A stretch of 64,000 nucleotides of DNA from Bispira polyomma (taxonomy: Eukaryota): positions 310,001-374,000 of the forward strand of contig OZ287749.1 in assembly GCA_965649765.1 (NCBI GenBank), in the 5' to 3' direction. Position numbers and translations under genes: made by a program. Of the stretch, positions 5,133 through 64,000 are shown one piece after another. The first letter of the stretch is position 1. Each line of letters opens with the position of its first letter. The notes below the pieces were generated by a model that saw nothing but the letters and a program-made list of their open reading frames with translations, searched no databases and was not told where the DNA came from.

Positions 5133-5135
5133 ACA

Positions 5136-23120: not shown

Positions 23121-23129
23121 TATTTAATT

Positions 23130-35905: not shown

Positions 35906-35911
35906 GATAAG

Positions 35912-39117: not shown

Positions 39118-40075
39118 GCCTAGCACCCCAGCCACACACAGCCACCACACCATAGGCAAGGAGACCAGACATGCCCCATCCAGAGAGACCCGCCACACAG
39201 AGTTGGCAACACCAACCACCCAACACTGAAAATTCACACCCTAGAAAACCAATGATTCCATCCTCAGGACTTCACAGAGTCCGGAACCCTCACGAAGACC
39301 TTCTTCTAGACCACCCACACCTTCCTTTAACAACTTACCTCTCCAAAACCACAGCCTATATATGATATCAACCTCTCTGCAATTGATGTTAGGGGTTCCC
39401 AAAACCCACTGTCAAACTTCTTCCCCTGCCAACTCACAGAGTGGCGACACACAGGTCCTCTGAGCATGCCTATCAAACCATCCAGGCCACCTTCTGCAAT
39501 ATGTATTCCCTTGCCCAAGATTAGCAGCTTTTGCATCGGGGGCGTCTGCTATAAGAACTCCCACATCTCCTTAAAGACAATGAGTATCCAACCAAGTGGG
39601 CGGAAGAAAAAGTTAACTTGATGGGGGAAATACTCACACAGAAATTTGAACAAATCAGACCTTTCAGGGAAACACTCATAGCCACCCAGAACAGACGAAT
39701 CATTCACAAAGTCCCTGACCCCTTCTGGGGCAGCACCTACACCAATCCTCACCACCCAGCCAAGACCCACAAGACCACACCAAAAACCCAACACTGAAAA
39801 CTCACAACCAGGTCCTCTGAGCATGCATACTAGACTATCCAGGCCACCTTCTGCAAGATGTACTGCTAAAGAACTTTCCCACCTCCTTAAAGACAATGAG
39901 AACCAAACCAAGTGGGCTGAAGAAACAAAGACAAGGATATCATCATTATACCAGCAGACAAGGGCTCCTCAATGATTATCATGAACTCCGCAGACTACAT
40001 CTCAGAAGCAAAACGCCAACTTTGCAATCAATTTCACTACAAACAAATACCCAAACCCCTAATAATTCTCCCTAA
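39118..40075 (+). mobile_element. Rearranged Penelope fragments (NADAR region of copy-A type + RT N-terminal piece)
   Basis: DNA similar to 50-650 and 2058-2185; NPLSNFFPC, SEHAYQTIQA, DPFWG; IIIPADKG. Confidence 0.85.
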
Positions 40076-40576
40076 TGAGACAAATTATTCCCGTCACAGG
40101 CAAAAAAATTCACCTAAATAAGACTAAAAACGCGTACTATTATGAAAATATACCCCCAGCAAAACAGTCTTACAGCACACCCCTCTTTATTCATACCGTA
40201 GCAAAAAACCCACACCCACCAACCCACCATAAATCTCTACTCGCAACCAGTGACACTGGATCCTACTAAACCTATAAACCTAACCATGCTATTGCCTACT
40301 AGCTATAGGTTAGGAAGTGGTTATGTTTTAGGGGGCTGTATTTATTATAAAGACCATTATAATAATAATGCACATATATTATTATAAGAGCAATTCACAC
40401 AGCGAAACCCTAGGGATCCAAAACTTACCTCAGCCATTCCCTTACTATAAGGTTTACTATTACCTATCACCCCAAACATTTAGCAACTCTGAAAAGCATT
40501 TGACAGCCAAAACAAATCATTCTTTTTAACAATATAACGACCCTCTTTTTGCTTCCAAAAACAAAAACTATGTAAA

Positions 40577-41966
40577 ATGTCTCTTTACAGCCCTGACATC
40601 TCCAACCCAACCAGGCACCTGACGACTTCCCTGAAGATGCTTCACCACCTCAGTAATATAGGGGCCAACCTGAATACCTCAAGGATGCCTGAGGGCTTCA
40701 ACCTTGGGAAGGAGGAACCCAAACGTTACCTCAGGCCAGCCTGTGACAATAATTACATTAATGGCTTACTACAACCACACATCAACCGACTGTTTGAGGG
40801 TACTTTGACTTAAGGAGACATTACAAGTTCACACTGTTCCAGACCATTCAAAAAGTAAAAAGCCTCAATCCAGGAAAAATTTTCTATGACAAGTCCACCT
40901 TGACTGGATAAGAAAAAAGCTTAATCAAAAATATCATTCCACAATCATCAATAGGTTCACCACCCTCTTCAAACGCAAAGATGACATCTCCCACCCAGAG
41001 GACCTGAACAGGCTATTATTTCAGATGTTTCCAGTGACCAGATGAACCACCAGGACCCACAATGGACGACCAGGACACCAGATCAGACGTGAACTTGACC
41101 TACAGAAACCAACTAACTACCAAGACAACTCTACCACAACTACCCAACAAGACACAACAGACACGAACAGCACTACTACCAACACCCAGGCTGATGGACC
41201 TAAAAGTCACTCCCCCTTTCCAGAGACCTACCAACTAGGACTACCACCTTCCATTTAGACACCCACAACAGATTTCACAGTCTTCAAACCAACGAAAGAC
41301 CTACCTAAATGACCAGAGCAGCCTAACAAACGAGTAGACCACACCAGCCAAAAACAAAACAGACAGGACCACCACAGCAAAAAGAACATCATAGACTACT
41401 GACAGTACAAACCTTCAAGGCACTACAACTAACCTATAAACCAAAAAAACAACAATTACTGCTGTATCATGTCTTTTTACAGCCCAGAGGTATCCCACCT
41501 GGCCAGACACCTCACCACCTCCCTGAAGATGTTACATCACCTCAGTAACATAGGTGCCAATCTAGACTCTGCCAGGATGCCACAGGGCTTCCACATGAAA
41601 AAGGATGAACTTAGACAATACCTCAGACCAGCCTGTGAAAACTACATTAATCACTTACTCAACCAGCATGTCCACCGGCTATTCGACAACACCTTGACAG
41701 ACCTCAGGAAACACTACAAATTCACCGTCTTCCAGGCTATCCAGAAAGTCAAAAACCTAAATCCTGGAAGGAATTTATTTGACAAAGCAACCCAACTAAC
41801 CCTGGACTGGATAAGGAAAAAATTACATCAGAAATACCATTCGACCACAACCAACAAATTCTCTGCCATCTACAGACAGAAACACAACATTTCCCACCCT
41901 GAGGACCTGAACAGGATACTGTTCCTGATGTTCCCACCAACAAAACCAACCAACCTTTATAAATAA
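40577..41966 (+). mobile_element. Two tandem PLE ORF1 5' fragments
   Basis: MS(L/F)YSP..S..RHLTTSLKMLHHLSNIG...YLRPAC...HYK, homologous to the N-terminus of ORF 5801. Confidence 0.8.
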
Positions 41967-42782
41967 TATTACACATATATTATTATAATAACAATTCACA
42001 CAGCTAAACCCTAGGGATCCAAAACTCATTTAAATATATTCCTCTGATACACATTCTCCTACACCCACCCACAATACACAACTAGGCCAAAACACAAACC
42101 CACCATATATCATTATACTCATAAATTCAAAAATCATCCCTTGAATTCACAACAAAACCCATCATAGGAAACCAACTACAAATCCACATAACACATACAT
42201 TAGCATTGTAACGATGAAATGACTTCTCACATGAGTACACTGAACCAGGACTAGTTAAGCAAAGGTGTCTAAATTTACCCCATAAAATTATTACCCAAAG
42301 CCCTTAAAAACTTCTTATCTCACTATAAGTTTAACTTAAAAGTATTTTTAAAATTTTTAAAATAACCCCCCCCCCCTTTTTCTTAAAAACCAAGAGACCT
42401 TTTTCTAATTACAATTCATGAAATACACCCTCCCCTTCACCCACTCCAATACCACTAAGCTATTACAATCAACTCCCTAAATTTCTAATCACCCATTTTC
42501 CAATCCACAATCACGATCCCCAACTTTGGCAATTACAATTACCCACATTTCAATCAGGCAACTGACACCCCTCCTCCAACTAATTCCAAATCTTACAATT
42601 ATCAAAAATAATCCTGATTACGATATTTATCCCTAACACCACCCTTTATCAATTACAATACACCCTAATTACGTTTTCCAATCACCTTCCTTTTCCAAAA
42701 AAACCTAACACTATTCTCTATAGATTAACTTCTCCCATTCCTCAATTACAATCACTATAAGCTCCCTCTCCCCTATCACCAC

Positions 42783-42816
42783 TATATAAACCCACACTCT
42801 AGTCCTTAAGTCATTC
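42783..42816 (+). promoter_or_regulatory. TATA + Inr of PLE leader
   Basis: TATATAAA at 42783, TCATTC at 42811. Confidence 0.55.
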
Positions 42817-42820
42817 CACG

Positions 42821-42859
42821 TTCCACTAATGAAGGTCGTTGACCGAAACATGTCTGGAA
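42821..42859 (+). ncRNA. Minimal type I hammerhead ribozyme
   Basis: ttcca-CTAATGA-A-GGTC gtt GACC-GAAA-CATG-TC-tggaa: perfect stems I and II, palindromic ACATGT stem III, GUC cleavage site; core G5 replaced by A. Confidence 0.8.
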
Positions 42860-44491
42860 ACTTGGTATATGTTAAGTTTAGTGACATTATACTATATTGT
42901 ACTATAATATCTTTCTTTTTTCAGATAGGGTTGTATTACTCAGCTAATTAAGTCAACTCTTTGAAGTAATAAATTACAGGTTTTTTCTTATTATACTATA
43001 TCAGGTGTTTTTTTGTAATTATAACGTTAATTATAGATATATTTTATTATAATATATCACTTCCTTGTATAAATATAACGTATATTCTATACATTTTTTA
43101 TTGGTTTACATAGTTAAATAGTCACTTATAAAGGTATACCAGGTATCTGTAAAATTGTATAGAAGAAGTATCTTATAATTGGAATACCTTCACGTTAGCA
43201 TATCTAGGAATTATTCTGTATTTGGTTTAATATATACCCTTAATACTATATATACCATACTTTAAACTCATTTCTGCACTATATAAATACTACACTTTAT
43301 ATATCTGCACAGTTCCATAATAACTACTTGTCTATGTAACGATTCCTTACTACTATATATATACTGCACTGTATAAAAAAATTCTTGTATTTTGCACCAT
43401 ATAAATACCACACATTGTACCTATATATACGTGCATTGTACCTTTTTGTACTATTGTACTCCCGTGTTTGTACTATTACTAGTCACATATTTCCTTGTAG
43501 ACTAGCTACCAACCATTTGGCTTAAAAACTATTCAATTCTTCTATGTAACATTCCAAATTTTGAATGAAATTCTAATATCTCTAAATAAATAAAAATTAA
43601 GATATCTATAAATAGTGAATATATTCACTAATTCTTCCATTACCCAGCGTTTTTTTTTTCTCTAGTCACCGTCAACTCATCCACCTACTACAAATCACCT
43701 ACTGCTCCATAGAACAAATAAAATCCCACAACTACCTTATACCAGGGAGCCCACACCACACAAAACTCACCATAACTCGCCTAATACAGCACCACTCCAC
43801 GCTGTCAAAGCAGAGCTAATCATCACAAATACTTACCCTAAAAGTCTCAACGGACTCTAAACGAGCTCTAAAGATACACGGCACTTACCTTAGACTCTAA
43901 CACAGCTACTCATCAACTCTAATTTACTACAAATCTTACCCCTACTTACCTAACACACACACCTAAAACTAAAACAATTCTTTTTCACTGGACTGACAAA
44001 TCAATTTTTTAACCATACACACACATTTACACACTACAGAACCTTCTCTCACAAAACACCACACAACTAAATGGCTCTACAAACTCCACATTCCACACTC
44101 TTTCTTCTCTCACTCACTTTTGTGGATCTTAATAAAGCCTTTGACAATCACCAAGCAATAACCCTATCAACGGACCATAAGCAATACCCTAGACAATAAA
44201 AGGTTTCTACCAAACGCCACACCCTCCATCTATTTCTCTACACACACACACCTGGGTAACACCCAGCTATGCACACACACAAAGCCTTTGACACATCAAG
44301 GCCAACTCCACACACAAACTTAACTATAAAAACCTGAAACCCTTCTCTGTATCTATACCACCCACACTTCCCTTCCAACAACACTTAAAATTTAGCGACC
44401 CTAAAAAGCCAGTTGACAGCTCAAACCAACCAAAAATTTCTTTTCTCCTCCCTCTCTCTTACCCATAAAAAACAAGTATTACTGCTGTACC

Positions 44492-46427
44492 ATGTCTTCC
44501 TACAGCCCTGACGTTTCCCACCTGGCCAGACACCTCACCACCTCCCTCAAGATGCTACACCACCTGAACAACATTGGGGCCAACTTAGACTCTGCCAGGA
44601 TGCCACAGGGCTTTAGTATGAAGAAAGATAACTGAGGCGTTACCTGCCTGCGACAACAACTACATAAACAATCTCCTCAACCAACACGTCAACCGACTGT
44701 TTGACAATACACTCACTGACCTCAGGCTACATTACAAGTTCACCCTCTTCCAGGCCATTCAGAAGGTGAAAGACCTCAATCCGGGACGGAATTTCTTTGA
44801 CAAGGCCACACAACTCTCCCTGGCCTGGATTAGGAAGAAACTCCACCAAAAATACCATTCCACCACAAACAAATTTGCAGCCATCTTTAGACAAAGACAT
44901 AACATCAACCACCCTGAGGACCTGAACAGGATGCTGTTCATGATGTTCCCTCCAATTAGACCCACTACCAGGGCACAGAACCGACGACCACAACATGACA
45001 CCAGACCTGACCTACTTACAGACGTTAGAAGACAACACCTACTACCATCACCCAAGACTTCCATTCCAAGACTTATGGACCTCCAAGTCAGCCCTCCATT
45101 CCAGAGGCCCACCAAGACCTTCCCTTGACACCACCGACCTAGGACGACAGAATTTAACATAGCTACCCACAACAGGTTCCAAGGACTCCAGACCAATTTA
45201 AGGACCCACACAGACCATCCATCCACCAGACAGCCACAAGACAACAAGACTGACAAAACCACCACCAAAACCAGACCTACTGAAAAAAAACCAGCACCCA
45301 CCACCACCAACAGAGGCCTTCCCTCTCCACCATGAACCAGTCACAGACCAGCAGACCCTCTAAGGAGACCACCATAGAGCCACCACCACCTTCCTTTCCT
45401 CAGACCTCGACAGCACCTACCCAGCTATGTGACCCATCCCTACCACCCATCGACGTCCAGGAATCCATTATGCAACATGTATCCTTGTTCCTCCAACTTT
45501 AGGGGGTCTCACTTCTCCAGTACAGAACAGGCTTACCAGACGATCCAGGCCAGCTTTTGCCAAGAATATGACCTAGCCCAACAAATCATGGACATTTCTA
45601 ACCCATTCCAGGCCAAACAACTCTCCAAGATCCTGAAGCAACATCCATCCCAGGCCCAATGGTCAGAAGAAAAGGCCAATCTCATGGGGGAGATCCTCCA
45701 TGAGAAGTACAAACAGGTTCCTGTCTTTAAGACTAATCTACTTCAGACTGGACGCAGAAGAATCACCCATAACCTCCCAGACTCCTTTGGGGGCACCACT
45801 TACTCCAACCAAGTAGGCAAAAAATTTATGGGCAGAGACAAATTCGCTACCCTCCTGATGACCATCAGAGACATACACACCCCCAAACCACAGAGACCAC
45901 CTAGGACATCCAGGACCCTCAGAGGCATCACCATACAGGACCACAAGACCACTACCCCTACACACGTACATAGAACCAACCTGACGGACACTACACTTCC
46001 CACCCTCACAACACCTACCAGGAGACTACCTAAGACCCCCACAAAAAACCAGACCAACCACCAGAAGGACCATCAATCACCCAGGACCACCACTGCAGTA
46101 CGACCTAAGGACCACAGGACACCCACGACTACCCACAGGACACCCACGACTACCCACAGGACACCCACGACTACCCACAGGACACCCACTACTACCCACA
46201 CTCCAGCCAGACCACAGACACCACCACCTACAGAGACTACACCTGATCTTCAGACCACCACCACACCTACCAATGACCACCCTCAGGACCACAACATTGG
46301 GGCCAACTTAGACTCTGCCAGGATGCCAAAGGGCTTTAGTATGAAGAAAGAGAACATCACACTCAAAAAATTACTTCTCAATCCAGATATAATTATCAAA
46401 TCTATAATAACCTACCATTTATATTAA
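44492..46427 (+). mobile_element. PLE ORF1 (third subfamily): N-terminal domain + NADAR, truncated before SGNH
   Basis: MSSYSPDVSHLARHLTTSLKMLHH; RNPLCNMYPC...STEQAYQTIQA...AKQLS...WSEEKANLMGEILHEKY...LLQTGRRRITH..DSFGG..GRDKFATLLMTIRD; 21-bp TTTHRTP repeat 46110-46200. Confidence 0.85.
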
Positions 46428-46754
46428 GGTACAAAGAAGAGCTTAAATCTGCCTCAATCTTAAACTTAAAGTCATAAATTCGCAAACAGAATGAAACTAA
46501 GAAACGTCCTATAAAGTATGGTCTAGTTAGGATTGTCAAAGTAATATAGTAAAGGGTATGGATATGTTTATATTTAATATAACTAAAGTTAAACAGTCAA
46601 AATAGACAGTATGATATATATAGAATACAGAAAAGGAGTCCTCCTGGATGTGTTGTACTATAAACGTCCTTAAAATATATATTACAGGTTTGTAAATGTC
46701 CTGTATTCAACTAAGCGTGTTTACAAGATACAATATACATGTACAATTGTACTA

Positions 46755-46895
46755 TCTGACATATTCCATAACTTGACAGTAGTATACACATCAGACTTCT
46801 ATTTGATATATTCCATAACTTGACAATAGAACACACACCAGACTTCTATTTGATAGATTTCATAACTTAACAATAGAACACACATGAGACTTCTA
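46755..46895. repeat. 49-bp minisatellite, 3 copies
   Basis: ccataacttgaca.tag..cacac..cagacttctatttgata. Confidence 0.75.
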
Positions 46896-47904
46896 TGTGA
46901 TTTCATAGCTTTAGCAAAGTCTGTACGTAAAACTGTGCATTTTACTGTTGTGTACAAACTAAATACATAAAGTGCCCCAGTCCAACCGGATTTACGTATC
47001 ACACAGAGCTGACACAAGTATTTGATACAAAAGTCCATGGAGAAGTCAGTTTATATTGTTTTATTTTGTCAAAAGTGTAAGGTGATGCAGAGATCCAAGT
47101 ATTTGTACGTCAATACCTATGAAGATTCACAAAAAGTGTATGCAAAGACAGGCAAATATACATAAAACTACACACATTGACCCGTTAATATAGGTAATAC
47201 TACGTCAATCTCTATGTAGTCTTACACTGTTTTACATGTATTACATTAACACTCGTTTGGCTACGTCAAACCACGTTTCAGGAATAGATGTACCCAAGTC
47301 CACATTTTTGGTAACGTTGCTTGCGACATTATTCTTACATGGTTTGTGTGTCCAAATTTCAAACAGTTTAAAATTATAAATTTCTTGCCTGTCATCTCTC
47401 ACACCAGGTTATGTATGTTTATGTATATCACGTCAACTCCTGCAAATACCACGCAAAACCTACACAAATTAATTTGACGGCCAGTGGGACTGATGGGCAT
47501 AAGATTCTGAATGTAGCAGCATCGCTTCTGTTTATAACCTTTCAGTGCAATACAACCCAATTTCTACGTTTATATCTGTGTTGTTACCTAATGTTACTGA
47601 ATAAACGATTATTATTATTAATATATTATTTGAGGTTGTTGATGCGTGTAAATTAGATATTTTTGGCATTAAAAAGTATTAGATATTCAATGTGGCATTT
47701 AGCTGGTACCTAAACCATTACTGTTACTTTTATGGCATGAGACATTAATATAATATAAACAGAATTTGGGAATAAGATCAAGTACTAAGATAAACCAAGC
47801 CCAGATACAGCCGATACGTTATCATATATATTTACACATAACAAATTCAGGAAAGTTCATGTTTCTATTAAACTTTTCTTGGTCATGATTTAGTATTTGT
47901 TTTT

Positions 47905-48150
47905 TTTTATAATTTGGATATTTAACGTCCACTCTAGTACCTTTTAAGGTTATATTGGGACGGGTAGTTGGAAACGCTGGAGGAAACACTGCATACAGTG
48001 GATCAAGGTTCTGCACTGTAACCAGCGACCCACATGAAGGAACTACCACCTTTCCCACATAGGCATCAACGGGATTCGAACTCACGCCGCCCAGAGGTGA
48101 GAGACCAGTGATTGTGAAGCGCAATGCTTGCTAACCACTAGGCCACCGCG
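47905..48150 (-). mobile_element. tRNA-derived SINE (family 1), full length
   Basis: Reverse strand: GTGGCCTAGTGG A box, GAGTTCGAATCC B box, 3' GTGGACGTTAAATATCCAAA + A-rich tail. Confidence 0.88.
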
Positions 48151-48881
48151 ACACCGGACATGATTTAGTATGAGACACATTTATTTCTTCTGTCAATATC
48201 AAAGGATATTTGTGTAGCGTAGACAATACCCTTAAGATGATACACAATTTATTTTATACAATATTACAGTAACATATAGACATATGTTTTGCATGCCACA
48301 ATGTTTTAAATTTGTGCAAACAATTGGTGTAGTAAATTTTTACACTATTACAGTAGTACAGTATTGCTTTAATGTTTAATGTGTGAACAATTATTGGAAG
48401 ATATGAATGAATAAACTAAAGTAATACAAAATGTGGAATTTTATATGGACAAACATGTACAAGGCGATGCTACTATAATGGCAGAGTATTTATATATGCA
48501 GAACTAAACCCATAATAATAGATTTACAAATCACTTATATGCTTTAGAAAAGGGACATGGAATTATGCACTTATGCTTGCAATGTATTGCTAAGGACAAG
48601 AGGCGATATCTCAGCAACAAGAATTCAATTATAGCCATCTTCCTTGCAATGGCAGTATATTACAATCGTTTCCCACTGAATGCATAACATGCCTTCTCTT
48701 ACATAAGATGTGACCTACATTTAATAACAGAAACAAACCTGATTGGTCTCATCGACACTCTTGTATTATGTCAATAACTGTAACCTTCAGATAGACGTCA
48801 CACTATGGTGATTAAAGGCTTTTGGTTTGTCAATGAAATACTTTTGGTGACCTTACTGACGGATAAACAGCAAATTGACCG

Positions 48882-49107
48882 CCCCCCCCCCCACCTTCCC
48901 CTCCACCACCCCTAAACCCCACTTACCCTCCCCCCCCCACCTTCCCCTCCATCACCCCTAAACCCCACTTACCCCCCCCCCCCCCACCTTCCCCTCCACC
49001 ACCCCTAAACCCCACTTACCCCCCCCCACCTTCCCCTCCACCACCCCTAAAACCCCCCCCCCACCTTCTCCTCCACCACCCCTAAACCCCACTTACCCCC
49101 TCCCCCC
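48882..49107. repeat. C-rich ~45-bp minisatellite
   Basis: Cn-accttcccctccaccacccctaaaccccactta, ~5 copies. Confidence 0.9.
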
Positions 49108-50845
49108 AAATAGCCTTACTTATATAAATAAAATCAAAACTATTACTGATACAAAGACAATGGAGTCCCTATACTGCAAAATTACTGCCAAAAAAGAAAT
49201 TAACGTGAAGAAAAGTCATTCAAGTGTCGTCTCTAAATTCATAACATTATGACATTTAATGTCTCAATTGGTAATTTATTGACTATCGGATTAAAGTGCT
49301 GTTTATTGTTATTGGAAGCTACTGGTAACTTAATGTTATAGAAGAGGCGTTATTTAAACAAAGAAACTGTTGACTTCTTGCCGATAATGACACATACAGC
49401 ACTTGATTGTGTTAGAATTACACCATTAATTAAGTATGTGTCAAGGCCACTTTACTTTGTCAGCAAAAGGCTTTCATCTCCGTTACGACTTAACCAAATG
49501 TCTAGATAAGGTGAAAATCAAACACACTTTGCTTCTTTGTGTAATGGGTAAGTTGGATTTCATTTTAACAGATGTAAATTGCGTATAACCCACTAAAACA
49601 CAAAATCTACAGTCTAAACAGCTGGCTGAATCTTGTATGAGCACTATTTTTTCTACAAAATATGAGCAAACAGTGACAAGATAACGTTAGTAAAGAGTTA
49701 TAGAATTAACACCTGACAGTTGACAAATATTTTCTTTCAAAAGTGAACAGTCTCTCTGTTCAAATTGAATATTTATGTTTTGGTCACTTTTCATAATTTA
49801 CATTAAATTGAGAGCAATAATATTGTCATAACTGCAAGCATGGCACAAGACAGACGATTATAATATTGTTTTAATTGAGCCACTGTATTATGTAAATAAA
49901 CAGAAATAATATGACAATTCACAACCAATATTCCTCTTTTTGGTACAATAATTACAATATTGTCTCGGACTTTTGTGCACCTTTCTGTAGTGCACTTTCC
50001 CTTGTATTCAATGATGACACTTTAAATGATCCCTGTATGGTCCCCTTGCATTAATATTATTTACTTTCTCACTAAAAGTGCTTTTTTAACGATAATAGAT
50101 ATTTAATGCCACTTATGATCATTCACCTAAAGTCACTATGATAACCTAATACGAGTGACTTTACAGGTTAAACAGTTTCAACTCACAGCTTTTATCAGTC
50201 ACTATTCCACCATTACAAAGCCTGTATATGTGTCCCAAAGGCAGTGTGGGGTCCAGTGGAGTGAGCTATTGCTTTGTAATCAGAGAGATAAGTGTGACAC
50301 TTGGAGTGGTGTATAAAAGCCTTAGAGAGCCAATTAGATCAGAGGTGAAGATCTTTTACTGATTACTGTTTGGATTGGTCTCCAGAACCTGATAAACTAA
50401 TGGCTTGATCAAAGCCATAGCCACATCTGATAATATTACTAGTAATGAGTACAGAACAAATTTAAAAGTCAATTTTATTTATTGAAAGTGTCTATAAGGA
50501 AACTTTTTGGGAGAAATCCAATCCAAATATGTTGTTACATATAACTGAACGAAATTAATTTATCAGTTGCAAGAGATTCATTTGAACCAAGTAATTGTAA
50601 ACATTTCATTCACGTCTTCTCTAGCAGCTATTTAATTCCTTTTAGTTCTTGACCACATTGTTTGGTGTACCAGGACCTTTACATGTTAATCAGGTTAACC
50701 ATCATAACTTGTCATACCTTACTGGTTCTAGATATTTACTATGCTTTGTTACTGGCACAGCTTCAAATGTAGCACTTATATATGTGCTTGGACTATAGGG
50801 TTATAGACATGTTTTTTTGTTAAAGTTTGAGGTTTTGATGTCAGT

Positions 50846-53800
50846 ATGTATGGTCCTTGTTTAACCCCCATTTATATTGTAGTATGTATCATACTCAGCC
50901 ATGTGCTGCACACCAGCACACAGAAGGACCTGGAACTGGTGGGTGTCGGGGCATCTCTTCCCGGGGAAGTCTATGAAGCCCTGGCCCCGGCATATGAAAG
51001 CTACAGGAGTACGTTTGTGAGTTTGGATAATGAGTATTATGCTGTTGGTAGTGGGCCTGGCCAAGAAATCTTTCTGAATGACATTGAAGACGACTTCCCC
51101 AGACCAATCACCTACATTGGATCAGATTCTGTTTTGACAGATGATGACTATCAGAAAAATTCTAATCTACAGATGATCCCAGTTTTGGCAGGGTATGATT
51201 GATATAAATTACAAATGTACACTAACTTCCTTTAAATACAATGAAATTATTGCATAGAACACAGCTGTGTATAAAATGGCTGTAAACATACAATTTGTGT
51301 CAACGAAATTGTATTATTATTAGTCTTTCTGCAATGTCCTCAAAACCAATATCATATTATAACCAATTTCCAAAATATCAATACAATCAATTTGCTTGTA
51401 TTTCCAGGTCTGTCGTATTGGCCTACAACCTCAACATAAACCCTGCCTACTCGCTCAACTTGACAATGGATTTAATAGTGGGAATATTTAATGGAACAGT
51501 TCAATTCTGGAATTATTCTGAAATAGTGGAGATAAACCCAAACATCAACCTTCCAAACAGCAGTATCCGTGCGATTACTCGGGCTGATGAATCTGGATCC
51601 ACCGAGATTTTTACATCCACACTAAGTTTTCATAGCCCAGAATGGAATGCTACCTATGGGACGTTTAGCAAAGGCTTGGATTTGGATGAAGAACCAGTAT
51701 ATTGGGATCCGGATGTGGTGTCTTTGTATGGGAGAACAAACGGGGATGTCAGGGATCATCCTGTCATATAGGAACTCTATTGGCTATGTCTCTGTGGCCG
51801 ATGTTGTTGTTGCGCAGCTGAGATACGCAAGAATATTACACAATGGTTACTATCTGGATGTTGAAATGCAGGATTATACAGACATCATGGAGAGGACTCA
51901 AGATCTGTTTGATTCACACTTCACACTGGATCTCTCCAGGCATGTCTTACCCGGGGAGTATCCTTTTATAGGCTACAGTTACTTCATCATGAACAAACAC
52001 TTCTCCACAAACTGCGATCTGATTGTTGAACTGGTCCGGTACATGGAATGGATCGGTGAAGACGACTTTGCAAGAGCAGAAATTCGAGACTTTCAAGTTG
52101 AACCAGTTTTGGTGGAAATAAGAGACCGTATTGTGAACGATGTCTTAAAGGAAATGACGTGCGAGAATAAAAACTTGTATGACTTAGTTCAAGAGCAGAA
52201 GTATCAAGAGTTTCTATCTCAGCAGGTATGGAGGATTCCTGTCTTCATATTTACTGGTGTGGTGGTTGTCTTTGTACTGTTACTAATTGCTTACATCATC
52301 TGGCAGCAAATCAAGCTACACAGAGCAATTAATGCAGATGAATGGAAGATTGACAAAGGGAACATTACTCTTAGCTGGACCCGTAAGTTAGGCATTATAA
52401 ACAAAGGGATTGGCAGCGCAATCTCCTTGAATATGTCTACGATGTCAAATGTTAGTATGTCTGCATTTTCTAACATATACGGTATTGGTATTTATGGCCA
52501 GAAAAATGTATGTCTCCGAGATGTTGGTGTCATCCATCTGGATACACATAGGAAAGAAATAAAAAAACTGTTAATCTGGATGAGAGACAAACTTCAACAC
52601 AACAACATTTTACGTTTTTATGGCATTGTCATGTTTCAAAGTGGCTACGAGAAATATTACGTCAGTGATTATTGCCCCAAAGGTACACTCTCCGATGTAG
52701 TTCAAAATGACAAGTATCGGATTGACGACAACATCAAGTTTTCTCTGGCAATGGATATCACCAATGGCATGGTATTTATACACAGTCACGGTCTTGTGCA
52801 CGGCCACCTGACATCGGAGCATTGTTTTATTGACCATCGGTGGAACGTTAAAGTCGCAGACTGGGAAAGTAACAAACTCAAGACAATGCACCAAACAAAG
52901 CGTATGTCCAAGACGAGTATTTCTCCACATGAGATAGAAGTTGTGGAGGAAGATCCCAACATCATAGCACGCCAGCAGATCTGGATGGATCCAGATTTAT
53001 TAAAACAGGATTCCATGCCTGTCTTTGTTAAGCATCATGATGTCTACAGCTTTGCTTTAATTCTGGTGGAGATTTTTACAAGAGAAGATCCATTTGCTGA
53101 GTTCAGTGTCAAAATGGAACCCATCCAGATACTGGAGCATATCAAGAGCACCAACTTAAAACCCGATGTGAATAGCATCAACCCACGACCCATTCGCCCA
53201 ATTATAACCAGTGCCTGGCACAAGGAGGCAGGAGAAAGGCTTACATTTGGGGCTCTTAACAAGGCTATCAAAGCGGCCAAACCCTCCAGAAAAGGTAACC
53301 AAAACTTGATTTGGTTGATATGTACAATGATCTGATAATTGTATATTGGTTTACCACCCACAGTTTTTGTGCTGTGTAATTGTATTTGTCACTGGATTTT
53401 TCTGTATTTGTCCTTAGTCTAATTGTATTTGTGTATTGTAGGGGGGCTATTTCAGAAATTTATATTTTTTTCACAGGAGTGATGGATTCTATGATGGAAG
53501 TTCTGGAGTCTTACGCCAGTCATTTAGAGGAGAAGGTATCAGAGAGAACCATAGAACTGGATGCAGCTCACAGGAGTCTACAGAACTTACTGCACCAGGT
53601 AGGCATTGGTTATTGTGTTTGTAACTTTAAAAGAGATTTAAACGACATATTTATGAACCATTTTAAAGACATGTCAATACAATAATGTATGCATTAAATA
53701 GAAGTCGACGGAAATTTCTGCACCAGGTAGGCAGTAGATTGATTATTGTATATGTAAATTTAGAAGAGGTTTACAAACTGGTCAAGCTATGAAACATTCT

Positions 53801-56800
53801 TCTCACAAATTTCTAGAACTTACTTCACCAGGCAAGGGTTTGGTGATGGGAGATAAAGGGTATATAAATAGATTACAATATAAAACATTCTACATACCAG
53901 TTCATAGGTTAATATGAAATTATTGTCTTATTGTCTTCCTTTGAATCACTTAACAGAATAGAATATCAAAATCGGGATATAGGCCAGGCACTGCAATCAA
54001 ATAGTGGGTAGTTGTTAGTCAAACCTGGATGTATATTTAATCATTTGTAACTATTAAATCACGTGTTTCGCTCCCTTTATAGATCTTACCACCTTCAGTA
54101 GCAGAAAGTTTGTCTCTTGTAACCAGTTACTATTAAAGCATGTGTTTGTCTCACTATTGTAGATCTCACCACCTTCAGTAACAGAAAGTCTGTCACTTGT
54201 AACCAGTTACTATTAAAGCATGTGTTTGTCTCACTATTGTAGATCTCACCACCTTCAGTAGCAAAAAGTCTGTCACTTGTAACCAGTTAATATTAAATCA
54301 TGTGTTTGTCTCACTGTTGTAGATCTTTCCACCTTCAGTAACAGAAAGTCTGTCACTTGTAACCAGTTACTAATAAAGCATGTGTTTGTCTCACTATTTT
54401 AGATCTTACCACCTTCAGTAGCAGAAAATCTGTCAAAGGGTGAATCAGTAGAACCAGAGGAGTTTGAGTCTGTCACCATCTTCTTTAGTGACATTGTGGG
54501 TAAGTATTATTGTATTTGATGCTTAGTAATATTATGGTGGAGTATATTTCAGTGACATTTATCAAATGCTTTATTGTCATCAAAAAGTTGCATTTGTCGT
54601 GATATATTTCAGTTTTCAACATTTTAAAATTTTATTTATGATAGAACAATTTAATTTATCAGTGGGAAACATAATAATGTACCTGATTGTATACTATAAA
54701 AACAACCTCTCTCATAACAGGAATCCAAGTGGTGGTAACAACTAACTACTTACTAATTAATTCTTCTAATCCACCATGGTAATTGATATATTGATGGTAA
54801 CAAAACTAGTTACCTTGATCAACTGTGTGCAGTATTTCCACCAGCGTTCCAACTATCCGTCCCAATATAACCAAAATAAAGGTACTAGAGTGGACGTTAA
54901 ATATCCAAATAATCAAATCTTGCTCACCCCCCCCCCCCCCCCTAGTTTACTCCGTGAACACCACCACATCCTTCCTTATGATCTGGCTGCATTGTTGGAC
55001 TTGTGGATAAGTTAAAAGGCTATGTGGTGGTGCTGTAGAAGATGCTTCACATAGATAAGGCACGTTAAAACTGCAAAATAGAAATGGATGGTTAGATTGA
55101 TATATTATTATTATTATTATTATTAGTCAGACTTTTTTAGCGCTTATTTTCGTTGTAACAAATTCTAAGGCACAGAAAAACCACAGCCAGAGTCGAAAAA
55201 CATAGGTGATAGACAGAAGGAAGTACTAAGGATATATCCCTTCAATTACTATATGTATATTTGTATTCCTCAATATATTGTAGGTTTTACTAAACTCTCA
55301 GCACAGTCCACACCACAACAAATTGTGAACATGTTGAATGACCTCTACACGACCTTTGACTCTGTCCTGGGTCATCATGATGTGTACAAGGTGGAGACTA
55401 TTGGGGATGCTTACATGGTTGTGTCAGGTGCTCCATACAATTAATCCTGAAATTAGTTAATATTATTTGTATTATTTTTATAAGGCACAGACTCATATTG
55501 ATTTCATTCTGAAAAGGGTGCAGCCATGGTTGAATTCTTTAACGCCTTCAGAGATTGTTTGGGAGCACTCTTCTTTAAAAAACAATTTAGGTTCAAAGAA
55601 AAAAATTTAAGTTTTGTGTTAATTTTGCTTTCAACACGTTTTATGTCATATAATTGCGGGCACTTCACTGGTGGACAAAATCAAAATTGGTCAGTTGACC
55701 AGGGTTTTCCAATCTAGAAAAAGCACCAGCCTTCAGCAACTCTACTGGCAACTTTTGCACATGCATACCTAGTCTGAGGTTTGAACAAATGACTTTCCCT
55801 CTGGATATACAATAAATGAATACATTTTTTAGCTTCAGAGGACACATATAGATCTCTTTATAAAAATATTGATTTCAAATACAGCCAACACTTGTAAGTA
55901 CTAGTATAAACAGCTAGTATGCTTCCTGAGTGAGCTGAGGGTGAACAATTGGTTGACAATTGGAAGAACCCAGGCGGGGGGTGTAAACTCAGCTAAGACC
56001 TCAATGGAGGAGATATCGGACTATACCTACACGCATTAATTACACATATAATTATCAACTATATCATTCTCTACAACCTATTCGATTTTTTCACCTTCTA
56101 GGTCTCCCAAAGATGAATGGTTTTCTTCATGCGGCAGAAATTTCGACGATGTCTCTGGATCTACTGGAGGCAGCCAGACGATTTAAAATCCGGCACAAAG
56201 CCAATGATGAGTTACAACTGAGGGCAGGGATCCATACTGGCCCAGTGGTGTCTGGAGTGGTGGGCCTTAAAATGCTGAGATAAAACAGAAACTTAATAAG
56301 TTACAGCTGAGGGTAGGGATACAGACTAGATCAGTGGTGTCTGGAGTGGTGGGCCTCAAAATGCCAAGGTAAAACAGGAACCTAATGAGCTACAACTGAG
56401 GGCAGGGATCCATACTGGATCAGTGGTGTCTGAAGTGGTGGGCCTTAAAATGCCGAGGTAAAACAGAAAGTGTATTTCACACTGTGCGTCTGTTTTTTTA
56501 GACAACTCTTGTTACTTCTAAATCACCCCAATCAATGACCAGATATCCTCTGTAGGATGTATCTGATACAATGACCAGATTACCTCTGTGGTATCTATCC
56601 CAGTCAATGACCAGATATCAGGGTAATTGGTTAAGGTTTTGTGGTTTACAAACCAGCCTTCAGCAAGTCTACTGCTAACTTTGTTACATACACACGCAAG
56701 GCCGAGATTTGAACCCACAGCAGGAAGTGTGTTTACCACTACACCACTGTTCCCCCCCCCCCCCCTTAATGTACTGTTCGTACACAGTATGTTAAGGTAA

Positions 56801-59800
56801 AAACTAAAAGGTTATCTTTAGTTTGCATTGATGAAAAGCACTTTTTGTGCTTATTCTGCAACACCATACTTCAATATAAGTCTTTTGATATATATGGAGT
56901 CATTGTAAAAAGTAGCATCGTGACTTATTGATAGAGAGTCTTCATTTTGACGGTGTGTAGTAAGAGGTATCTGGTTACATAAAACTCACAATGTTCACAT
57001 CCATTAATAAATACAAAGAATTGAGTCCACTTTAATAAGATTCTAGACTTACTTACAAGTCTTTAGTTTTGGTGAAACACTGTATGACTCAATATTTTTC
57101 CGTGTATACAATTAAGTCTATGACTTGGCTAAGTCCCTTCGTGAATACGTGGCCAGGCCATGTTTACAAACGAGAGATAAGCTCACTCTGCATACATAAT
57201 TATTGAACTTCAGTAGTGCATATTTGAGAAAGGGGGTTCATCTTATCTGTGTTCTATATATAGATCTCCGATCATGTTTACAAATAAACGAAAAGTGCAC
57301 TCTGCATGCATAATTTATGCCCGGCACAGCCGTGTATATTTGACAGGGAGGGGTGGGGGGGGGGGGGGGCTTATCTTATCTTTCATCAGTAAACATGGGC
57401 GAGGGTGAACTGGAGTCATAAGCCTTTGTTATCTTATCAGTTGATCTAAAGGGAAAACATAGAGTGGTAAATAGCCTGAGGTTATAGGAACTATGCTGTT
57501 ATGTAATCGAGATGGCATAAACTCTTGCTAATCTTGTGTAACGTAGTTTCTAAGAAGTTCGGTGAATGTGTCCAAAATGTTGAAGATGAGATGTAATCAG
57601 CGTGGTTAACATTGGCTAAAGAGGGTGATTAGTTGTTGTGGCTTAGGTCGTGTATTTCTCAACTATAAGGGGGATTAGTACTTCTTGTGTGTGAATAATT
57701 AGAAACAAAACAAAACTGACAAACTTATATGAAAAGTATGTATAAAGGCCATTATAGTAATCACGTGACACTCAACCCCTATATAAGTCCATGAAGTCTG
57801 AAGACATTGATCCAATACTCATTTATGAACAGTTGATTATAGCACTTTGAACATTAGAATGGAGATAGTGAAAAACACAATAGGCGGACAGCTTCTGTGC
57901 TACAATGGCTATATGTACACCAAAAAGTTAACAAGGGAGACTAAATAATTAATGCCTCATAACATTCGCCGTTAAGGTGTCTGCCATCCAAACCGTTGAC
58001 ACTCCAATATTACTGTTGTTGTTTTCTTGATACTATCTAAAGTACATTGGGATGGTTTTACACAATTGCACATTGAACAGTTATACATGACCCAAACTAT
58101 CTATAAATCGATTGCCAGTTCTATTTATTTACTGTATAAGGAGATTAAGGACGTGTATCAGAATACTCCATCAGACTAGTAGGGAGACAATTCCACTCAG
58201 CAGGCGCAGCAACTATCAATGCTTTTAAACCAGCCAGTGTTTTGGGTAAGAAAGGGGGAATAGGGGGGGGGGGGGGGGTATACTTAAGGAAATAAACATA
58301 CACATGAAATTATTGGAATATCACAGATATTATATTAGCTTCTACACTTTAATGACAAAAATGGTTGAGACCAAGACGTTTTAACTACACAATTGGAAGC
58401 TATATTTTAAAAAGAAACCAGACATTGTCTCTGTATCAGGATGCATTACAGATCTCCCTGGGGAACTGATCCTTTTGTAGCCCTGGATTTTTATCATCCA
58501 CAGCGTGCTGTTGTTTCGATGCTAACAAGGGTGCTGCCATCTTAAAAATAATATGCAAGGCCTTAATGGATTGGTTGGAAACAATCCACCTGTCCAAAAT
58601 GAAGGGTTGGTATATAGTGGCCATATCAACGTTAGTGTATTTCACACTGTGCGCCTGTCTCCTTGTTTGTCCCAGTAGCAGCGAAGATGGTATTATGCCT
58701 TCTGCACAAACTTACATTAACAGATGTGATCTCTGCTGTTTTAGGTACTGTCTGTTTGGAGACACTGTTCACACAGCCACCAGGACAGAGTCTCTCTTTC
58801 TAGGAAGGTATTGTGGCTCCTGCAAGACTTCTATTAGATGTGATCTATTTGCTGTTTTAGGTACTGTCTGTTTGGAGACACAGTTAACACAGCCACCAGG
58901 ATAGAGTCTCTCTTTCTAGGAAGGTATTGTGCCTCCTGCACAGACTTCTTTTAAATGTTTTCTATTTGCTGTTTCAGGTACTGTCTGTTTGGAGACACTG
59001 TTAACACAGCTAGCAGGATGGAGTCCACATCAGTAGCCAACAAGATCCAGGTTTCAGAGTCCACGGCCAGCCTGCTCCAGAAGGTTGGAGGCTTTAAGCT
59101 TGAGTTGAGAGGTGAACAGGATATTAAGGTGTGGGGAATATATTTTTTTGTCAGAAAACCTCTATCTTGAAGGTTAGCTGGGTGCAGCCATGTTGTATCA
59201 CCATTGGTCTCAACCATTTTTGTCATTAAAATGTAGAAGCAAATATAATATCTGTGGTATTCCAATAGTTTCATGTGTCTGTTTATTTCCTTTAGTATAA
59301 CCCCCCCCCCCCCCCCCCCCATTGCAAAATACTGGCTGGTTCAAAATCATTCACAGTTGCTGCACCTGCTGAGTGGAATTCTCTCCCTACTAGTCTGACA
59401 AACCAGTTAGGGGGTGAAGCTTTATTGACAATATTCATGAAATTGATATCTTCTTATTACTGTTAATGTTATATTTTCCCCTTATTTGTGGTTAATATAT
59501 TTGTCTGATACACAGTTAGCAGTTTATTTGATAAGATAAATTAAAGAATTAGTTATCTTACAACTATTATAATTGACGTTGATAAAGCTAGCACACCTTT
59601 ACTTCTGAGATTCTTGTGTTGTGAAACATGTCATAGCTGACCTAACTAAAGTATTTGGGATTTCCCCCAAACCCATAACGGCCACAACCAGGTGAAAATC
59701 TGAAAAGGGTAGTTGATCAAGGGTTTTCTTCTCTGCAAAATCCCCAGCCTTCACCAAGTCTACTGCCAACTTCTTCACAAACATGTCAGGGCAAAGTTTT

Positions 59801-60261
59801 GAACCCAAGGCTACAGAGGTGTGATTGAAGTGTTACCACAAATTATCAATACTAAGGTGCCTGTATAAGATCTTAGTAAACTAAGAGAATATTCTGTGAT
59901 TTGGTAATGACAATTGCACAAAGGATATAAAAACATATTGTGCATGAATTAAATGCTGGTAATCAAAAAATTGAGTCATTTTTGACTACCAAGATTTGTT
60001 GTGCCTTATATTAAGAGTCTGGCAATGGTAGTACTCTTCTACATCATTGTATTAGTACTTTCCTAAGTTGTGTCAAAATTTGAACTGAAATAATTATATA
60101 TTTGGTAACAGCCTTTACTACTGTAATATTATTTGTTGGTTTACTTTCAGGGCAAGGGTCAAATGAAGACTTACTTTCTGCTGTCTAAAGCCGGTTACAG
60201 AGCTTTAAACATTGAGGATGAGACATCTGACTATTGCACCAAATATCTCAGACCTGTCTGA
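50846..60261 (+). CDS. Receptor guanylyl cyclase with PstS-type phosphate-binding ectodomain (8 exons; two apparent lesions, possibly pseudogene)
   Basis: Exons 50846-51192, 51408-53294, 53477-53598, 54403-54499, 55284-55427, 56102-~56279, 58978-59128, 60151-60261 with compatible phases; signal peptide; PstS motifs [28 protein letters not shown]; [25 protein letters not shown]; pseudokinase HGHLTS; cyclase [50 protein letters not shown]. Confidence 0.9.
54045..54432 (+). repeat. 80-bp tandem repeat spanning the exon-4 acceptor (5 copies)
   Basis: AG|ATCT at 54081, 54161, 54241, 54321, 54401. Confidence 0.92.
54811..54918 (+). mobile_element. SINE family 1, 3' fragment
   Basis: ccaactatccgtcccaatataacc...ggtactagagtggacgttaaatatccaaa matches the 3' half of 47905-48150. 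Confidence 0.8.
56200..56469 (+). repeat. ~89-bp triplication of the exon-6 3' end and donor
   Basis: [18 protein letters not shown](P/L)R unit three times; donors at 56369 and 56458, first copy AG|AT. Confidence 0.9.
56640..56750 (-). mobile_element. tRNA-derived SINE (family 2); related fragments at ~55690-55790 and ~59690-59830
   Basis: Reverse strand GTGGTGTAGTGG (A box) and GGGTTCAAATC (B box), shared AGCAGTAGACTTGCTGAAGGCTGG core. Confidence 0.6.
58700..59020 (+). repeat. ~116-bp triplication of the exon-7 acceptor
   Basis: AG|GTACTGTCTGTTTGGAGACAC at 58745, 58861, 58978. Confidence 0.9.
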
Positions 60262-60378
60262 CTCACAAACTGTATGAACATAACTCATTTAGTGAATTTA
60301 ACATTGACATTGTTTTAATCAAAACCTGTATGAAATAACTCATTTTGTAAACTAACATTTATCTTGTCAATGTAGTGA

Positions 60379-60766
60379 CCTTAAGTTAAGTTTAAAATTT
60401 AAGTGCAAAAACACCGTAGTGTTACACTGCACTATTACAATTAATAAATACATTAACTAAATATATATACAAACAACATTAACATTAAACAAAGGAAGCA
60501 ATGACTAGATCAGAGAATGAAATACAAAAAATATAACAAATAAATACAAAATATAAATATAACAATACTACACAATAAATTAACTCTTATTAACAGAATA
60601 AATTATTTAACTATATCTTAAAACTTATAAAACAAACCTATTTCCTTTAAATAATTAAAAATACTATTTACATTGCTATTTAATAAATCTTTCATATTAT
60701 TAACATTAAAAAACTTTTTTTGAATGTCATGTAGGTCGATACAGTCTAATAATATATGCCTGACTG
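60379..60766 (-). mobile_element. 3' fragment of the I-clade LINE with 15-bp TSD
   Basis: Similar to 18271-18705; TSD TTGTCAATGTAGTGA at 60364-60378 and 60767-60781. Confidence 0.9.
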
Positions 60767-61214
60767 TTGTCAATGTAGTGATAAAAGTGAGATAGGTGTA
60801 ACAAAAATCACATCATGATAACTAATTCAGATGTAAATCAGAAAAAAACATGACGAGTTTGTGTCATCAATGCAGATTAGCCGACAACGCTACTAAAATT
60901 GTTCCAGTTATACGTAAATCTTTACCACCCTTTAAGTTTTAAAAAACTAAAATATTATTGTTTTCGATAAATAATGTAATGTAGATTAGTTTTCAGGACT
61001 AGTCTTCAGGAAATAGTGTGGTTCCCAAAGTTAACGTTAACTTTAACCTTCGTTGAATAACATAGATTTCGAGTAATTGTTATCTGTATTTTGATAAACT
61101 GAATTCTTTTGAGAGCTGAGCTAGAATTAATTATCTCAAAAGTACAGTAGGAACAGAAAAGTCCCCAAAAAGAATTGACAGTGAGAAAAGAAACTGTAGA
61201 CGTTGGTAAGTTTA

Positions 61215-61563
61215 TCATAAGTACACCATGTATTGTTCCACTATTATATCACTACCATAAGTACACCATGTATTGTTCCACTATTATACCACTACCGTAA
61301 GTACACCATGTATTGTTCCACTATTATACCACTACCATAAGTACACCATGTATTGTTCCACTATTATACCACTACCGTAAGTACACCATGTATTGTTCCA
61401 TTATTATACCACTACCATAAGTACACCATGTATTGTACCACTATTATACCACTACCATAAGTACACCATGTATTGTACCACTATTATACCACTACCATAA
61501 GTACACCATGTGTACCACTATTATACCACTACCATAGGTACACCATGTATTGTTCCACTATTA
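61215..61563. repeat. 40-bp minisatellite, ~9 copies
   Basis: cataagtacaccatgtattgttccactattataccactac. Confidence 0.95.
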
Positions 61564-62024
61564 CCTGACAGTAAAGATTTTTGTAGGCAGAGATCTATAC
61601 TACAATATATATATAAGGGTACAATTCGGGCTGTGGGATACAAACTGGACCTTGGCTATTTAGAATGGAAGTATTTATGCCTTAGATTATCAGTCCGACA
61701 ATTATGGTACTTTTCTAACACATATTGTTTATATTTTCCTAAACTATTTTAAAATGTTGAACTGAAAAAAATTTTTACCTCGGCTAGCTGGAATGGTTAA
61801 AACTATACATGGGAGAGAACAATAAATACAGGCGAAAACGATGAAACAACCACAAACACAAGTACAAGAGAAAACAATATAAGAGAAAAAATGAAGGAAC
61901 AACTCGGCAAGTGATAAAAACAAGAAGGTGCGCAAATAAAAGAAATAAATGGCACCACAAGTGTCGTGTAAGGTGTATTTGTCACAAGTCATGTTTATGT
62001 ACCAACACACTTCTAAATGCAAAG

Positions 62025-62362
62025 TGTTAGACAAAACCATAATGCCCAATTAATAAGGACAGTATTATGACACCCGTGTACTGTATGTTTTTAACAACAC
62101 ATTTTGTAAAAGTCAATAGTCAGACAAAAGCATAACCCCCACTTGAACATGACAGTATTATGACACCCGTGTACTGTATGTTTTTAACAACACATCTGTA
62201 AACATCAACAATCAGACAAAAGCATAACCCTCACTTGAACACGACAGTATTATGACGCCCGTGTACTGTATGTTTTTAAAAACACATTTGTAAACGTCAA
62301 GAGTCAGACAAAAGCATAACCCCCACTTAAACACGACACGATTATGACACCCGTGTACTGTA
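62025..62362. repeat. ~93-bp tandem repeat with dispersed units to ~63290
   Basis: gacagtattatgacacccgtgtactgtatgtttttaacaacac...cagacaaaagcataacccc. Confidence 0.85.
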
Positions 62363-64000
62363 GTGGTGGGAGACAAGTTGATGCCTGTGTACCAATCGAC
62401 GCTTTCCTATATAAAACACTTGGTATCTCTTTGTAACATTACTCTAAGCAGACTTTAAAGTAATAGAAGCATACAAACATAAGAATAGATTTAACATGAG
62501 AATTGTTAAAACTATATTTGCAATACTTTAAATAGGTGGGCATCAATTGGTACACGTGTGATAATTGGTCTGCCACTAGTATATGTATATATATAAATAT
62601 ATTTAACACATTTTTATATGCCAACAGTTAGACAAAAGCATAATGCCCACTCATAAAAGAACAGTATTATGGTTCCCGTGTACTGTACAATTATGTTGCT
62701 TTAACAACACATCTGCAGATGCCAGTAGCTGTACAAAAGCCACAGGTTATAACTCACTAAAGAGTTAAGAAAATAATGTTACTTAAAACTCAACAAACTA
62801 ACAACAAACATTACAACAATAAATGGAAGAGAAAATGTTGAAACAACTTAGAAACAACTAAACAACTGAAGAACAAGCAAAAACAAGAAGCTTCAAAAAC
62901 AAAAGAAATCAAAGACATGAGTGAACTGCATCCTAACATAATTCAAGTCTCTGTACTTTATAAGTTGCAGTTGATGCCTTAATTGTAGATTCATCTTGAT
63001 CTGCTATCCATGACACATTATGTGTCAATGGTTTCCTGAATCGAAATCAAAAAGCTTTTTAAGAAGGGTACTCCATACCTTTATCTAAAATAAATCACCA
63101 GGCCAGAACCAAAGAAATCAATTCCGTTCAGAAGCATACTGACGGCCAAAAAGGACAGTATTATGACTCCCGTGTATTGTATATTTGGCAGTATGTTTGT
63201 AAATACCAACAGTTAGACAAAAGCATAATGCCCACTCAAACATGACACTATGATGGCTCCCATGTACTGTAGTGGTGGGAGACCAGTTAATGCACAACCT
63301 AATTCAAAAATTGGACATCTCTTTAAATGAATAAAGTATTTCAAATACCAATTTTAGTACTGCAAACATAATGAGGATACACAATATACTGATCTGCCAC
63401 CACTAGATAAAAGCAGAACAATCACTTCAAATGACTCCTCATACAAGTGTACTTCTCCATCTTCAGAGCTGCTGTGGTTTGGACATCTGATTGCGAGTTG
63501 GTTGCAGGCTGCAAGTGGTGCTACAGACGGACCCAGCAATAACATAATGTCCCCCTCTGAATAAAAACAGGGCACCCCACACCCCACAAATAACATTATA
63601 GTTCACACGTATTGTATACTGCCTCGCCACTGGTCCACCAGTGAATTTCGCTAGCCAGTTAATTTCGCCAGTTGACATTTTTATAATATACTGCTTGTTT
63701 AGCGATTATGGTCAAAGCAAAAATTATGGACACTCCTAATTTTAAAACATTATTTTAATAATTCTAAGACAGTATTCCCTGTTTATCAGTTGCAGCTCAA
63801 AGCAGATAACTATTTTAATTACCATTAATATTCAAGATGACCATAATGGGTGGACATTACAACATTTTGTATTAATTAAATACCATAAAATCTTTTTGAT
63901 AAAGTGATTTATGATGCCGAAATTCATTGGCTGACCAGTAGATATTTTCGTCATCGGGAAATTAAACATATTTTTAATCAAAAGCAGAGACGTGGAATTT

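Follow-up and report, generated by a model that had tools for sequence, protein, structure and literature searches.

A family of protostome receptor guanylyl cyclases with a PstS-type ectodomain, and its disabled copy at a locus of Bispira polyomma

It has long been an open question how animals sense phosphate outside their cells, and we know of no receptor dedicated to it that has been established in animals. A locus of Bispira polyomma raises the question of whether a phosphate-binding domain best known from bacteria has been built into such a receptor. It lies in a 64,000-nucleotide stretch of contig OZ287749.1 (GenBank assembly GCA_965649765.1, forward-strand positions 310,001 to 374,000), which we call the window and whose own positions are used throughout. 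On the plus strand, which carries all gene features given below, positions 50846-60261 hold an eight-exon animal gene that encodes a signal peptide, a PstS domain, one transmembrane (TM) helix, a pseudokinase, a coiled coil and a guanylyl cyclase. A first reading of the letters alone, here termed the original prediction, had proposed a phosphate- or oxyanion-gated receptor for cyclic guanosine monophosphate (cGMP) signalling. Our analysis shows that the window copy is a recently disabled duplicate, a pseudogene, and that it belongs to a family for which a role as phosphate or oxyanion sensor is plausible, with a candidate ligand and a candidate mode of gating. The 1.04 Gb genome (75 contigs) contains five loci of this family. 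Three copies are 98-99% identical, namely the window copy (C2), C13:34.519-34.529 Mb and C10:57.60-57.61 Mb. The two others, C10:598-619 kb and C12:15.670-15.697 Mb, are distant paralogues that have the same domain order, far more introns and canonical cyclase motifs.

We scanned exons and domains one by one and called the signal peptide and the TM helix from hydropathy. The architecture, domains and motifs of the original prediction are all in place. Exon 1 (50846..51192) begins with an ATG, ends at a GT donor and encodes a signal-peptide-like N-terminus, with a hydrophobic stretch at residues 6-17 (mean 2.74), followed by the first part of the PstS domain with its GASLP (50948-62), GSGPG (51047-61) and GSD (51119-27) motifs. 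It is 73% identical to an orthologue at locus L027 and matches the PstS model TIGR00975 weakly (E value 0.002). Exon 2 (51408..53294), flanked by AG and GT, carries a frameshift discussed below and encodes the remainder of PstS, for which the matches are stronger (TIGR00975, E 4e-22; PBP_like_2, PF12849, E 2e-8); exon pieces scanned singly score below the TIGR00975 equivalog cut-off of 205 bits. This part includes the phosphate-binding loop RADESGST (51580..51603), which matches the positions of R135, D137, S139, G140 and T141 in E. coli PstS. Exon 2 continues with the single TM helix (52241..52303; mean hydropathy 2.93 over 21 residues) and the kinase-homology domain (52508..53293; PF07714, PK_Tyr_Ser-Thr, E 2e-26), in which VCLR replaces VAIK, HGHL replaces HRD, with loss of the catalytic Asp, and DWE replaces DFG. 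In the exon-wise Pfam scan of the window gene, neither ANF_receptor (PF01094) nor the NIT domain (PF08376) was found, and PF12849 takes the place of the former.

The intracellular half is that of a receptor guanylyl cyclase. The best solved match of the kinase-homology domain is NPR1/GC-A (E 9e-20). Exon 3 (53477..53598) encodes the coiled-coil signalling helix and is 92% identical to L027; its counterpart in Owenia aligns with the NPR1 helix, and the coiled coil and cyclase of the Owenia protein together align with NPR1 without a gap (E 5e-81). Exon 4 (54403..54499) contains the end of the coiled coil and the start of the cyclase (FSDIV). The rest of the cyclase is encoded by exon 5 (55284..55427; Guanylate_cyc, PF00211, E 3e-17) with KVETIGD at 55388-408, exon 6 (56102..56279; PF00211, E 1e-10), whose donor is lost, exon 7 (58978..59128; PF00211, E 8e-15) with YCLFGD from 58979 and NTASRMES, and exon 8 (60151..60261), which holds the last cyclase strand, a short tail and the stop codon (60259-61) and is of equal length and open in the C13 copy. 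FSDIV, KVETIGD, YCLFGD and NTASRM, in exons 4, 5 and 7, supply the two aspartates, the glutamate and cysteine that specify guanosine triphosphate, and the asparagine and arginine. The glutamate and cysteine, which the original prediction had named as guanylyl-specifying, are thus present in exons 5 and 7, respectively.

Is the ectodomain a genuine PstS fold, and does it keep a phosphate site? With E. coli numbering read from the alignment to 1ixh, the contact residues of the window gene are S10, L11, S38, D56, R135, D137, S139, G140 and S141. The equivalents of the E. coli ligands had been described as conserved; all the positions are indeed kept, but three residues differ conservatively (T10 is S, F11 is L and T141 is S). 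Serine at position 10 is also found in solved PstS proteins (8ods, 5j1d). A profile of the closest relatives searched against the PDB gave a best E value of 2e-24, and all 18 matches are phosphate-binding proteins. The Owenia ectodomain matches E. coli PstS across the whole domain (E 1e-31). For this relative we also obtained an AlphaFold model (predicted local distance difference test, pLDDT, 94.8; predicted template modelling score, pTM, 0.90), and it models as PstS, as the original prediction would have it: E. coli PstS is the best Foldseek match (TM-score 0.79 by query and 0.89-0.90 by target, root mean square deviation 2.4), and the first protein with another class of ligand, ModA, appears at rank 50. 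Among the kinase-bearing family members the pocket is retained to a high degree: R135 in 81/81, D137 in 71/81, S139 in 70/81, G140 in 76/80, T or S at 141 in 76/81, S or T at 10 in 16/16, S38 in 21/23 and D56 in 20/23, compared with a median column conservation of 0.48. Numerous invariant columns map to the cleft or its surroundings. Finally, an invariant cysteine pair is found at the membrane-proximal end of the ectodomain, and the Owenia model ends in a helix leading toward the membrane.

Far from being an oddity of one genome, the architecture defines a family that spans five protostome phyla. Homologue searches recovered about 80 kinase-bearing proteins with a PstS-type ectodomain. Named members come from annelids (Owenia, Paralvinella and the leech Helobdella), molluscs (the gastropods Patella, Haliotis, Batillaria, Gigantopelta, which has three paralogues, and Aplysia, the bivalves Mercenaria and Argopecten, and the chiton Liolophura), nemerteans (Lineus, Tubulanus), the priapulid Priapulus and the tardigrade Paramacrobiotus. 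NCBI labels them 'speract receptor', 'ANP receptor-like', 'retinal GC-like' or 'gcy-like'. Among the named members, themselves the minority of the matches, none is from a deuterostome (vertebrates included), an arthropod (flies included), a nematode or a cnidarian. The nearest named relative in trees is Paralvinella. PstS and cyclase share one polypeptide in the annotated proteins of Owenia (CAH1793096.1) and Paralvinella, in which each exon piece has its match and the sequence of pieces is preserved; in P0013, a single genomic frame without interruption extends over most of PstS and on through the cyclase. The fusion of PstS to the cyclase therefore does not depend on our splice model for the window. 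The L027 orthologue has the same introns and is 73-92% identical by exon. Nonsynonymous divergence (dN) between the window gene type and L027 is about 0.11 and synonymous divergence (dS) is saturated; by this comparison of sequences, the gene is under purifying selection. A tie to biomineralisation, which had been considered, is unlikely as a general role, since nemerteans, the priapulid, the tardigrade and the leech, animals that do not mineralise, carry the gene. As a separate observation, the window-type gene has lost most of the PstS-to-kinase introns that the C12 paralogue keeps, and P0013 has no introns from the PstS-to-kinase region to the cyclase. Introns have been lost repeatedly, perhaps via reverse-transcribed copies.

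Where did the ectodomain come from? Bacterial contamination is rejected: the gene has seven introns, and the position of the one inside PstS is shared, down to the codon, with the L027 orthologue and the C12 paralogue, in line with the argument from spliceosomal introns in the original prediction. The distant C10 paralogue uses the same acceptor for this intron. A recent bacterial transfer also finds no support, since a scan of prokaryotic genomes with the family pattern returned a single match, at 38%. The best matches beyond animals are eukaryotic receptor-like proteins. PstS is joined to a cyclase in Andalucia and Willaertia and to 7tm_3 in Calcarisporiella; Chromosphaera, Entosiphon and Rigifila have proteins with PstS in tandem. 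We selected 64 PstS domains with an animal profile and built a maximum-likelihood tree with midpoint rooting and no mixture model. In this tree a branch (77/94) sets the animal ectodomains apart within a mostly eukaryotic receptor group (94/96). A starred clade of their own (100/97) unites the stand-alone PstS proteins, one of which is encoded in a pstSCAB-phoU operon. A recent bacterial transfer is thus unlikely, on a tree whose small sample gives no proof of date. The original prediction had left the choice between ancient gene transfer and domain shuffling; shuffling that drew on an ancient receptor module of eukaryotes agrees better with the tree than does a transfer from bacteria to animals. 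Moreover, a gene-dense eukaryotic contig (L035:5929-9881, ENA ERZ25042219) encodes two PstS domains, a TM helix and a kinase and cyclase of the receptor guanylyl cyclase type. This hints that the PstS-kinase-cyclase fusion may predate animals; the contig possibly comes from a single-celled relative of theirs. In the fungal and protist proteins P0117, P0125, P0127, P0141, P0019, P0058 and P0156, PstS, often in tandem, heads proteins similar to class C G protein-coupled receptors (GPCRs) or other proteins with multiple TM helices. Such PstS heads represent a broad and little-described eukaryotic use of the domain.

Comparison with known systems sets the family apart. It shares with the metazoan receptor guanylyl cyclases (NPR1/GC-A, GC-C, retinal guanylyl cyclase, the speract receptor and nematode GCY proteins) the single TM helix, the kinase-homology domain, the coiled coil and a class III cyclase with the specifying glutamate and cysteine. 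However, its ectodomain is a PstS/PBP_like_2 type 2 domain, whereas theirs is an ANF_receptor type 1 domain, and in its kinase-homology domain the lysine of VAIK is missing as well and DFG is replaced by DWE. With E. coli PstS (1ixh) and the DING proteins it has in common the fold (TM-score 0.9 for the Owenia model), the domain length and all phosphate-contact positions, at 26-28% identity. Unlike them it is membrane-anchored, fused to a signalling module and spliced, and it has extra inserts and the invariant cysteine pair. The window gene also differs from the PstS of ABC transporters in being flanked by retroelements and in having no pstCAB context. The NIT guanylyl cyclases (Moroz 2020; Jokura 2023) are likewise animal enzymes whose sensor domain was originally known from bacteria, and they are widespread in invertebrates, and cGMP production by NIT-GC1 of Platynereis requires that domain (10.1101/2023.08.02.551600). 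Yet NIT, a nitrate/nitrite domain, is unrelated to PstS in fold and ligand. The receptor nucleotidyl cyclases of Acanthamoeba and giant viruses (PMC4053784) resemble the family in signal peptide, PBP_like_2 ectodomain, single TM helix, kinase and cyclase. Acanthamoeba has 67 such adenylyl cyclases, most with one or two of these domains. They differ in combining the ectodomain(s) with EGF and in having two kinases that flank a fungal-like type IIId adenylyl cyclase, as opposed to one pseudokinase and an NPR1-like cyclase here; they have been set apart from the metazoan type IIIa enzymes, and their function is conjecture (PMC4053784). Finally, the fungal class C GPCRs, such as the chytrid protein SPPG_06488 with its PBP_like_2 ectodomain (PMC3251606) and P0127 of Calcarisporiella, use the same ectodomain family as receptor head, with a seven-TM output instead.

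How might such a receptor work? On balance we consider it probable, from sequence and the fold model, that in intact members extracellular inorganic phosphate would bind between the lobes via S/T10, S38, D56, R135, D137, S139, G140 and S/T141 and close the PstS clamshell. This movement would be passed on by the short helix, which is probably tied by the invariant cysteine pair, to the TM helix of a dimer, and the pseudokinase and coiled coil would relay it to the cyclase and so alter its cGMP output. While architecture, pocket and catalytic residues are observed, we infer from them that phosphate is the ligand, that the cysteines form a disulfide and that the dimer is coupled, as well as the direction of the response, its tissue and its role. 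Several points weigh against this proposal. Bacterial PstS proteins bind phosphate with micromolar affinity, and if the family does so too, the phosphate of body fluids would saturate the site; a receptor of this kind would suit the sensing of seawater or gut contents better than that of body fluid. The position of E. coli G138 is mostly K, S or D in the family and E in the window gene, so that the rim of the pocket differs. The fold model is that of the Owenia relative, which is 33-48% identical to the window gene over the ectodomain pieces. The catalytic set of E, D, C, N and R is kept in 12 and lost in 34 of the 46 family proteins scored (isoforms included), which means that cGMP output is not the whole story. 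Lastly, none of the RNA runs searched for the stretch carries it, which bears on the expression of any copy in the species.

An alternative that we consider unlikely is that the clamshell holds another ligand, namely a phosphorylated or phosphonate molecule, polyphosphate or another oxyanion such as arsenate, sulfate or bicarbonate, and that the proteins are receptors for food or chemical cues. The variable rim residue 138 and lineage expansions with many paralogues suggest diversification of the ligand, and the 67 cyclases of Acanthamoeba exceed what one ligand would need (PMC4053784). Against this, the complete set of contacts is retained, and D56 is kept in 20 of 23 members. In PstS this residue selects protonated phosphate over sulfate. 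Somewhat less probable still is that phosphate serves as a permanently bound structural cofactor or modulator, the true agonist being a peptide or protein that binds elsewhere, as in the receptors for natriuretic peptides and sperm attractants. High-affinity PstS sites would be filled at the phosphate level of body fluids, and known receptor guanylyl cyclases bind peptides between two ectodomains, outside the clamshell cleft. However, the clustering of invariant columns in or near the cleft speaks against it, and the same domain is the sole ectodomain on protist and fungal GPCRs and cyclases, which points to sensing.

Could the window copy itself be such a sensor? Its architecture is as the original prediction described it, but it is not an intact functional gene. 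A deletion of two nucleotides (51741..51742) shifts the frame within the PstS domain after 51741 and leads to a stop at 51769-71 and a predicted product of 236 residues; exon 2 measures 1887 nucleotides here and 1889, all open, in the C13 copy. The C13 and C10 copies carry the two extra bases. The truncated transcript would probably undergo nonsense-mediated decay. In addition, the exon-6 donor is AT (56280-81), where C13, C10 and L027 have GT, and an in-frame TAA follows directly. Since this stop precedes them, the later donors in an 89-nucleotide tandem array cannot rescue the copy, a possibility we rejected. The near-identical copy at C10 is broken as well, by indels of its own (7, 1 and 7 nucleotides). 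The C13 copy, in contrast, which lies on the minus strand at 34519122-34528614 of its contig, has GT-AG borders at 7/7 introns with matching phases and encodes 1012 residues without a stop; judged by its intact frame, it is probably the functional gene of this type. The duplication that carries the gene is segmental: 39161..64000 of the window shares at least 20-25 kb, at 92-99% identity, with stretches close to contig ends on C13 and C10.

We hold it to be quite improbable that the breaks are assembly errors or that one locus was assembled three times, although the copies are 98-99% identical and near contig ends, and the public DNA runs X1 and X3 show the open frame with the two extra bases. 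The window sequence contains no N, the copies lie on three long contigs, each with its own indels, the deletion is present in an X2 contig that reads through the site, and one X1 contig is identical to the window across the AT donor. Both breaks thus exist as DNA, with the caveat that Logan contigs collapse copies; a run may also derive from the assembled animal, so that these data are not fully independent. As to the repeats near the exons, arrays in three introns are made of the gene's own splice sites and exon ends, and their unit number varies among the genomic copies. An 80-nucleotide array (54050..54435, 4.8 copies) is built from the exon-4 acceptor, the exon being entered only from the last copy; the 89-nucleotide array (56210..56469, 2.9 copies) comprises the 3' end and donor of exon 6, and a 116-nucleotide array (58689..59025, 2.9 copies) the exon-7 acceptor.

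Highly improbable, finally, is the proposal that active members need a partner, as heterodimers with cyclase-dead members, or that dead members signal without cGMP, a single gene being unresponsive to phosphate alone: the 34 degenerate proteins do keep their pocket, but KVETIGD and YCLFGD are found at 5/5 loci of this genome, with no cyclase-dead paralogue among them. All the named mollusc members scored are cyclase-degenerate and have kept the phosphate pocket; P0012, P0014, P0022, P0030, P0048, P0049, P0169 and P0176-P0178 are possible cyclase-dead co-receptors. Returning to phosphate as the ligand, a wider version of this reading, to which we give not quite an even chance, is that of a protostome cell-surface receptor dedicated to converting extracellular phosphate into a cGMP signal, inherited from unicellular ancestors and, in molluscs, divided into subunits with active and with dead cyclases.

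A literature search, with subscription papers outside its coverage, found no description of an animal PstS-guanylyl cyclase family, and the subfamily is apparently undescribed. It shows that domains of the PstS fold are part of spliced genes in true animal genomes, and it adds PstS to ANF and NIT as a further type of ectodomain on animal membrane guanylyl cyclases. As a candidate, it offers a phosphate sensor in a single chain, with a recognisable pocket and a standard, easily measured output, and it might be put to use as a natural reporter that converts phosphate into cGMP. This significance is tempered by a window copy that is dead, by the inferred nature of the function and by an architecture already latent in automatic public annotation.

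The remainder of the window contains mobile and virus-like elements. Tandem decayed Penelope-like retroelements, with reverse transcriptase (RT)-like open reading frames (ORFs) and a GIY-YIG nuclease, occupy 426-10566 and 41469-46427. Their first ORFs encode NADAR domains (PF08719, E 2e-8 to 1e-14) and a GDSL/SGNH-like domain, and the elements show strong C and A strand skew. At 11964-13300, a zinc-finger ORF lies beside an ORF of 175 residues that has no Pfam match and looks by eye like a Crypton-like tyrosine-recombinase fragment. An ORF of 287 residues (35789-36652, plus strand) weakly matches the Borna disease virus P40 nucleoprotein (E 1e-5, below the cut-off) and adjoins an integrase of the long terminal repeat type (36847-37500); it is likely an endogenous RNA-virus element. 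Finally, a fragmented long interspersed nuclear element at 18556-23924 on the minus strand, with ORF1, endonuclease, RT and RNase H, was read by eye from the ORF list.

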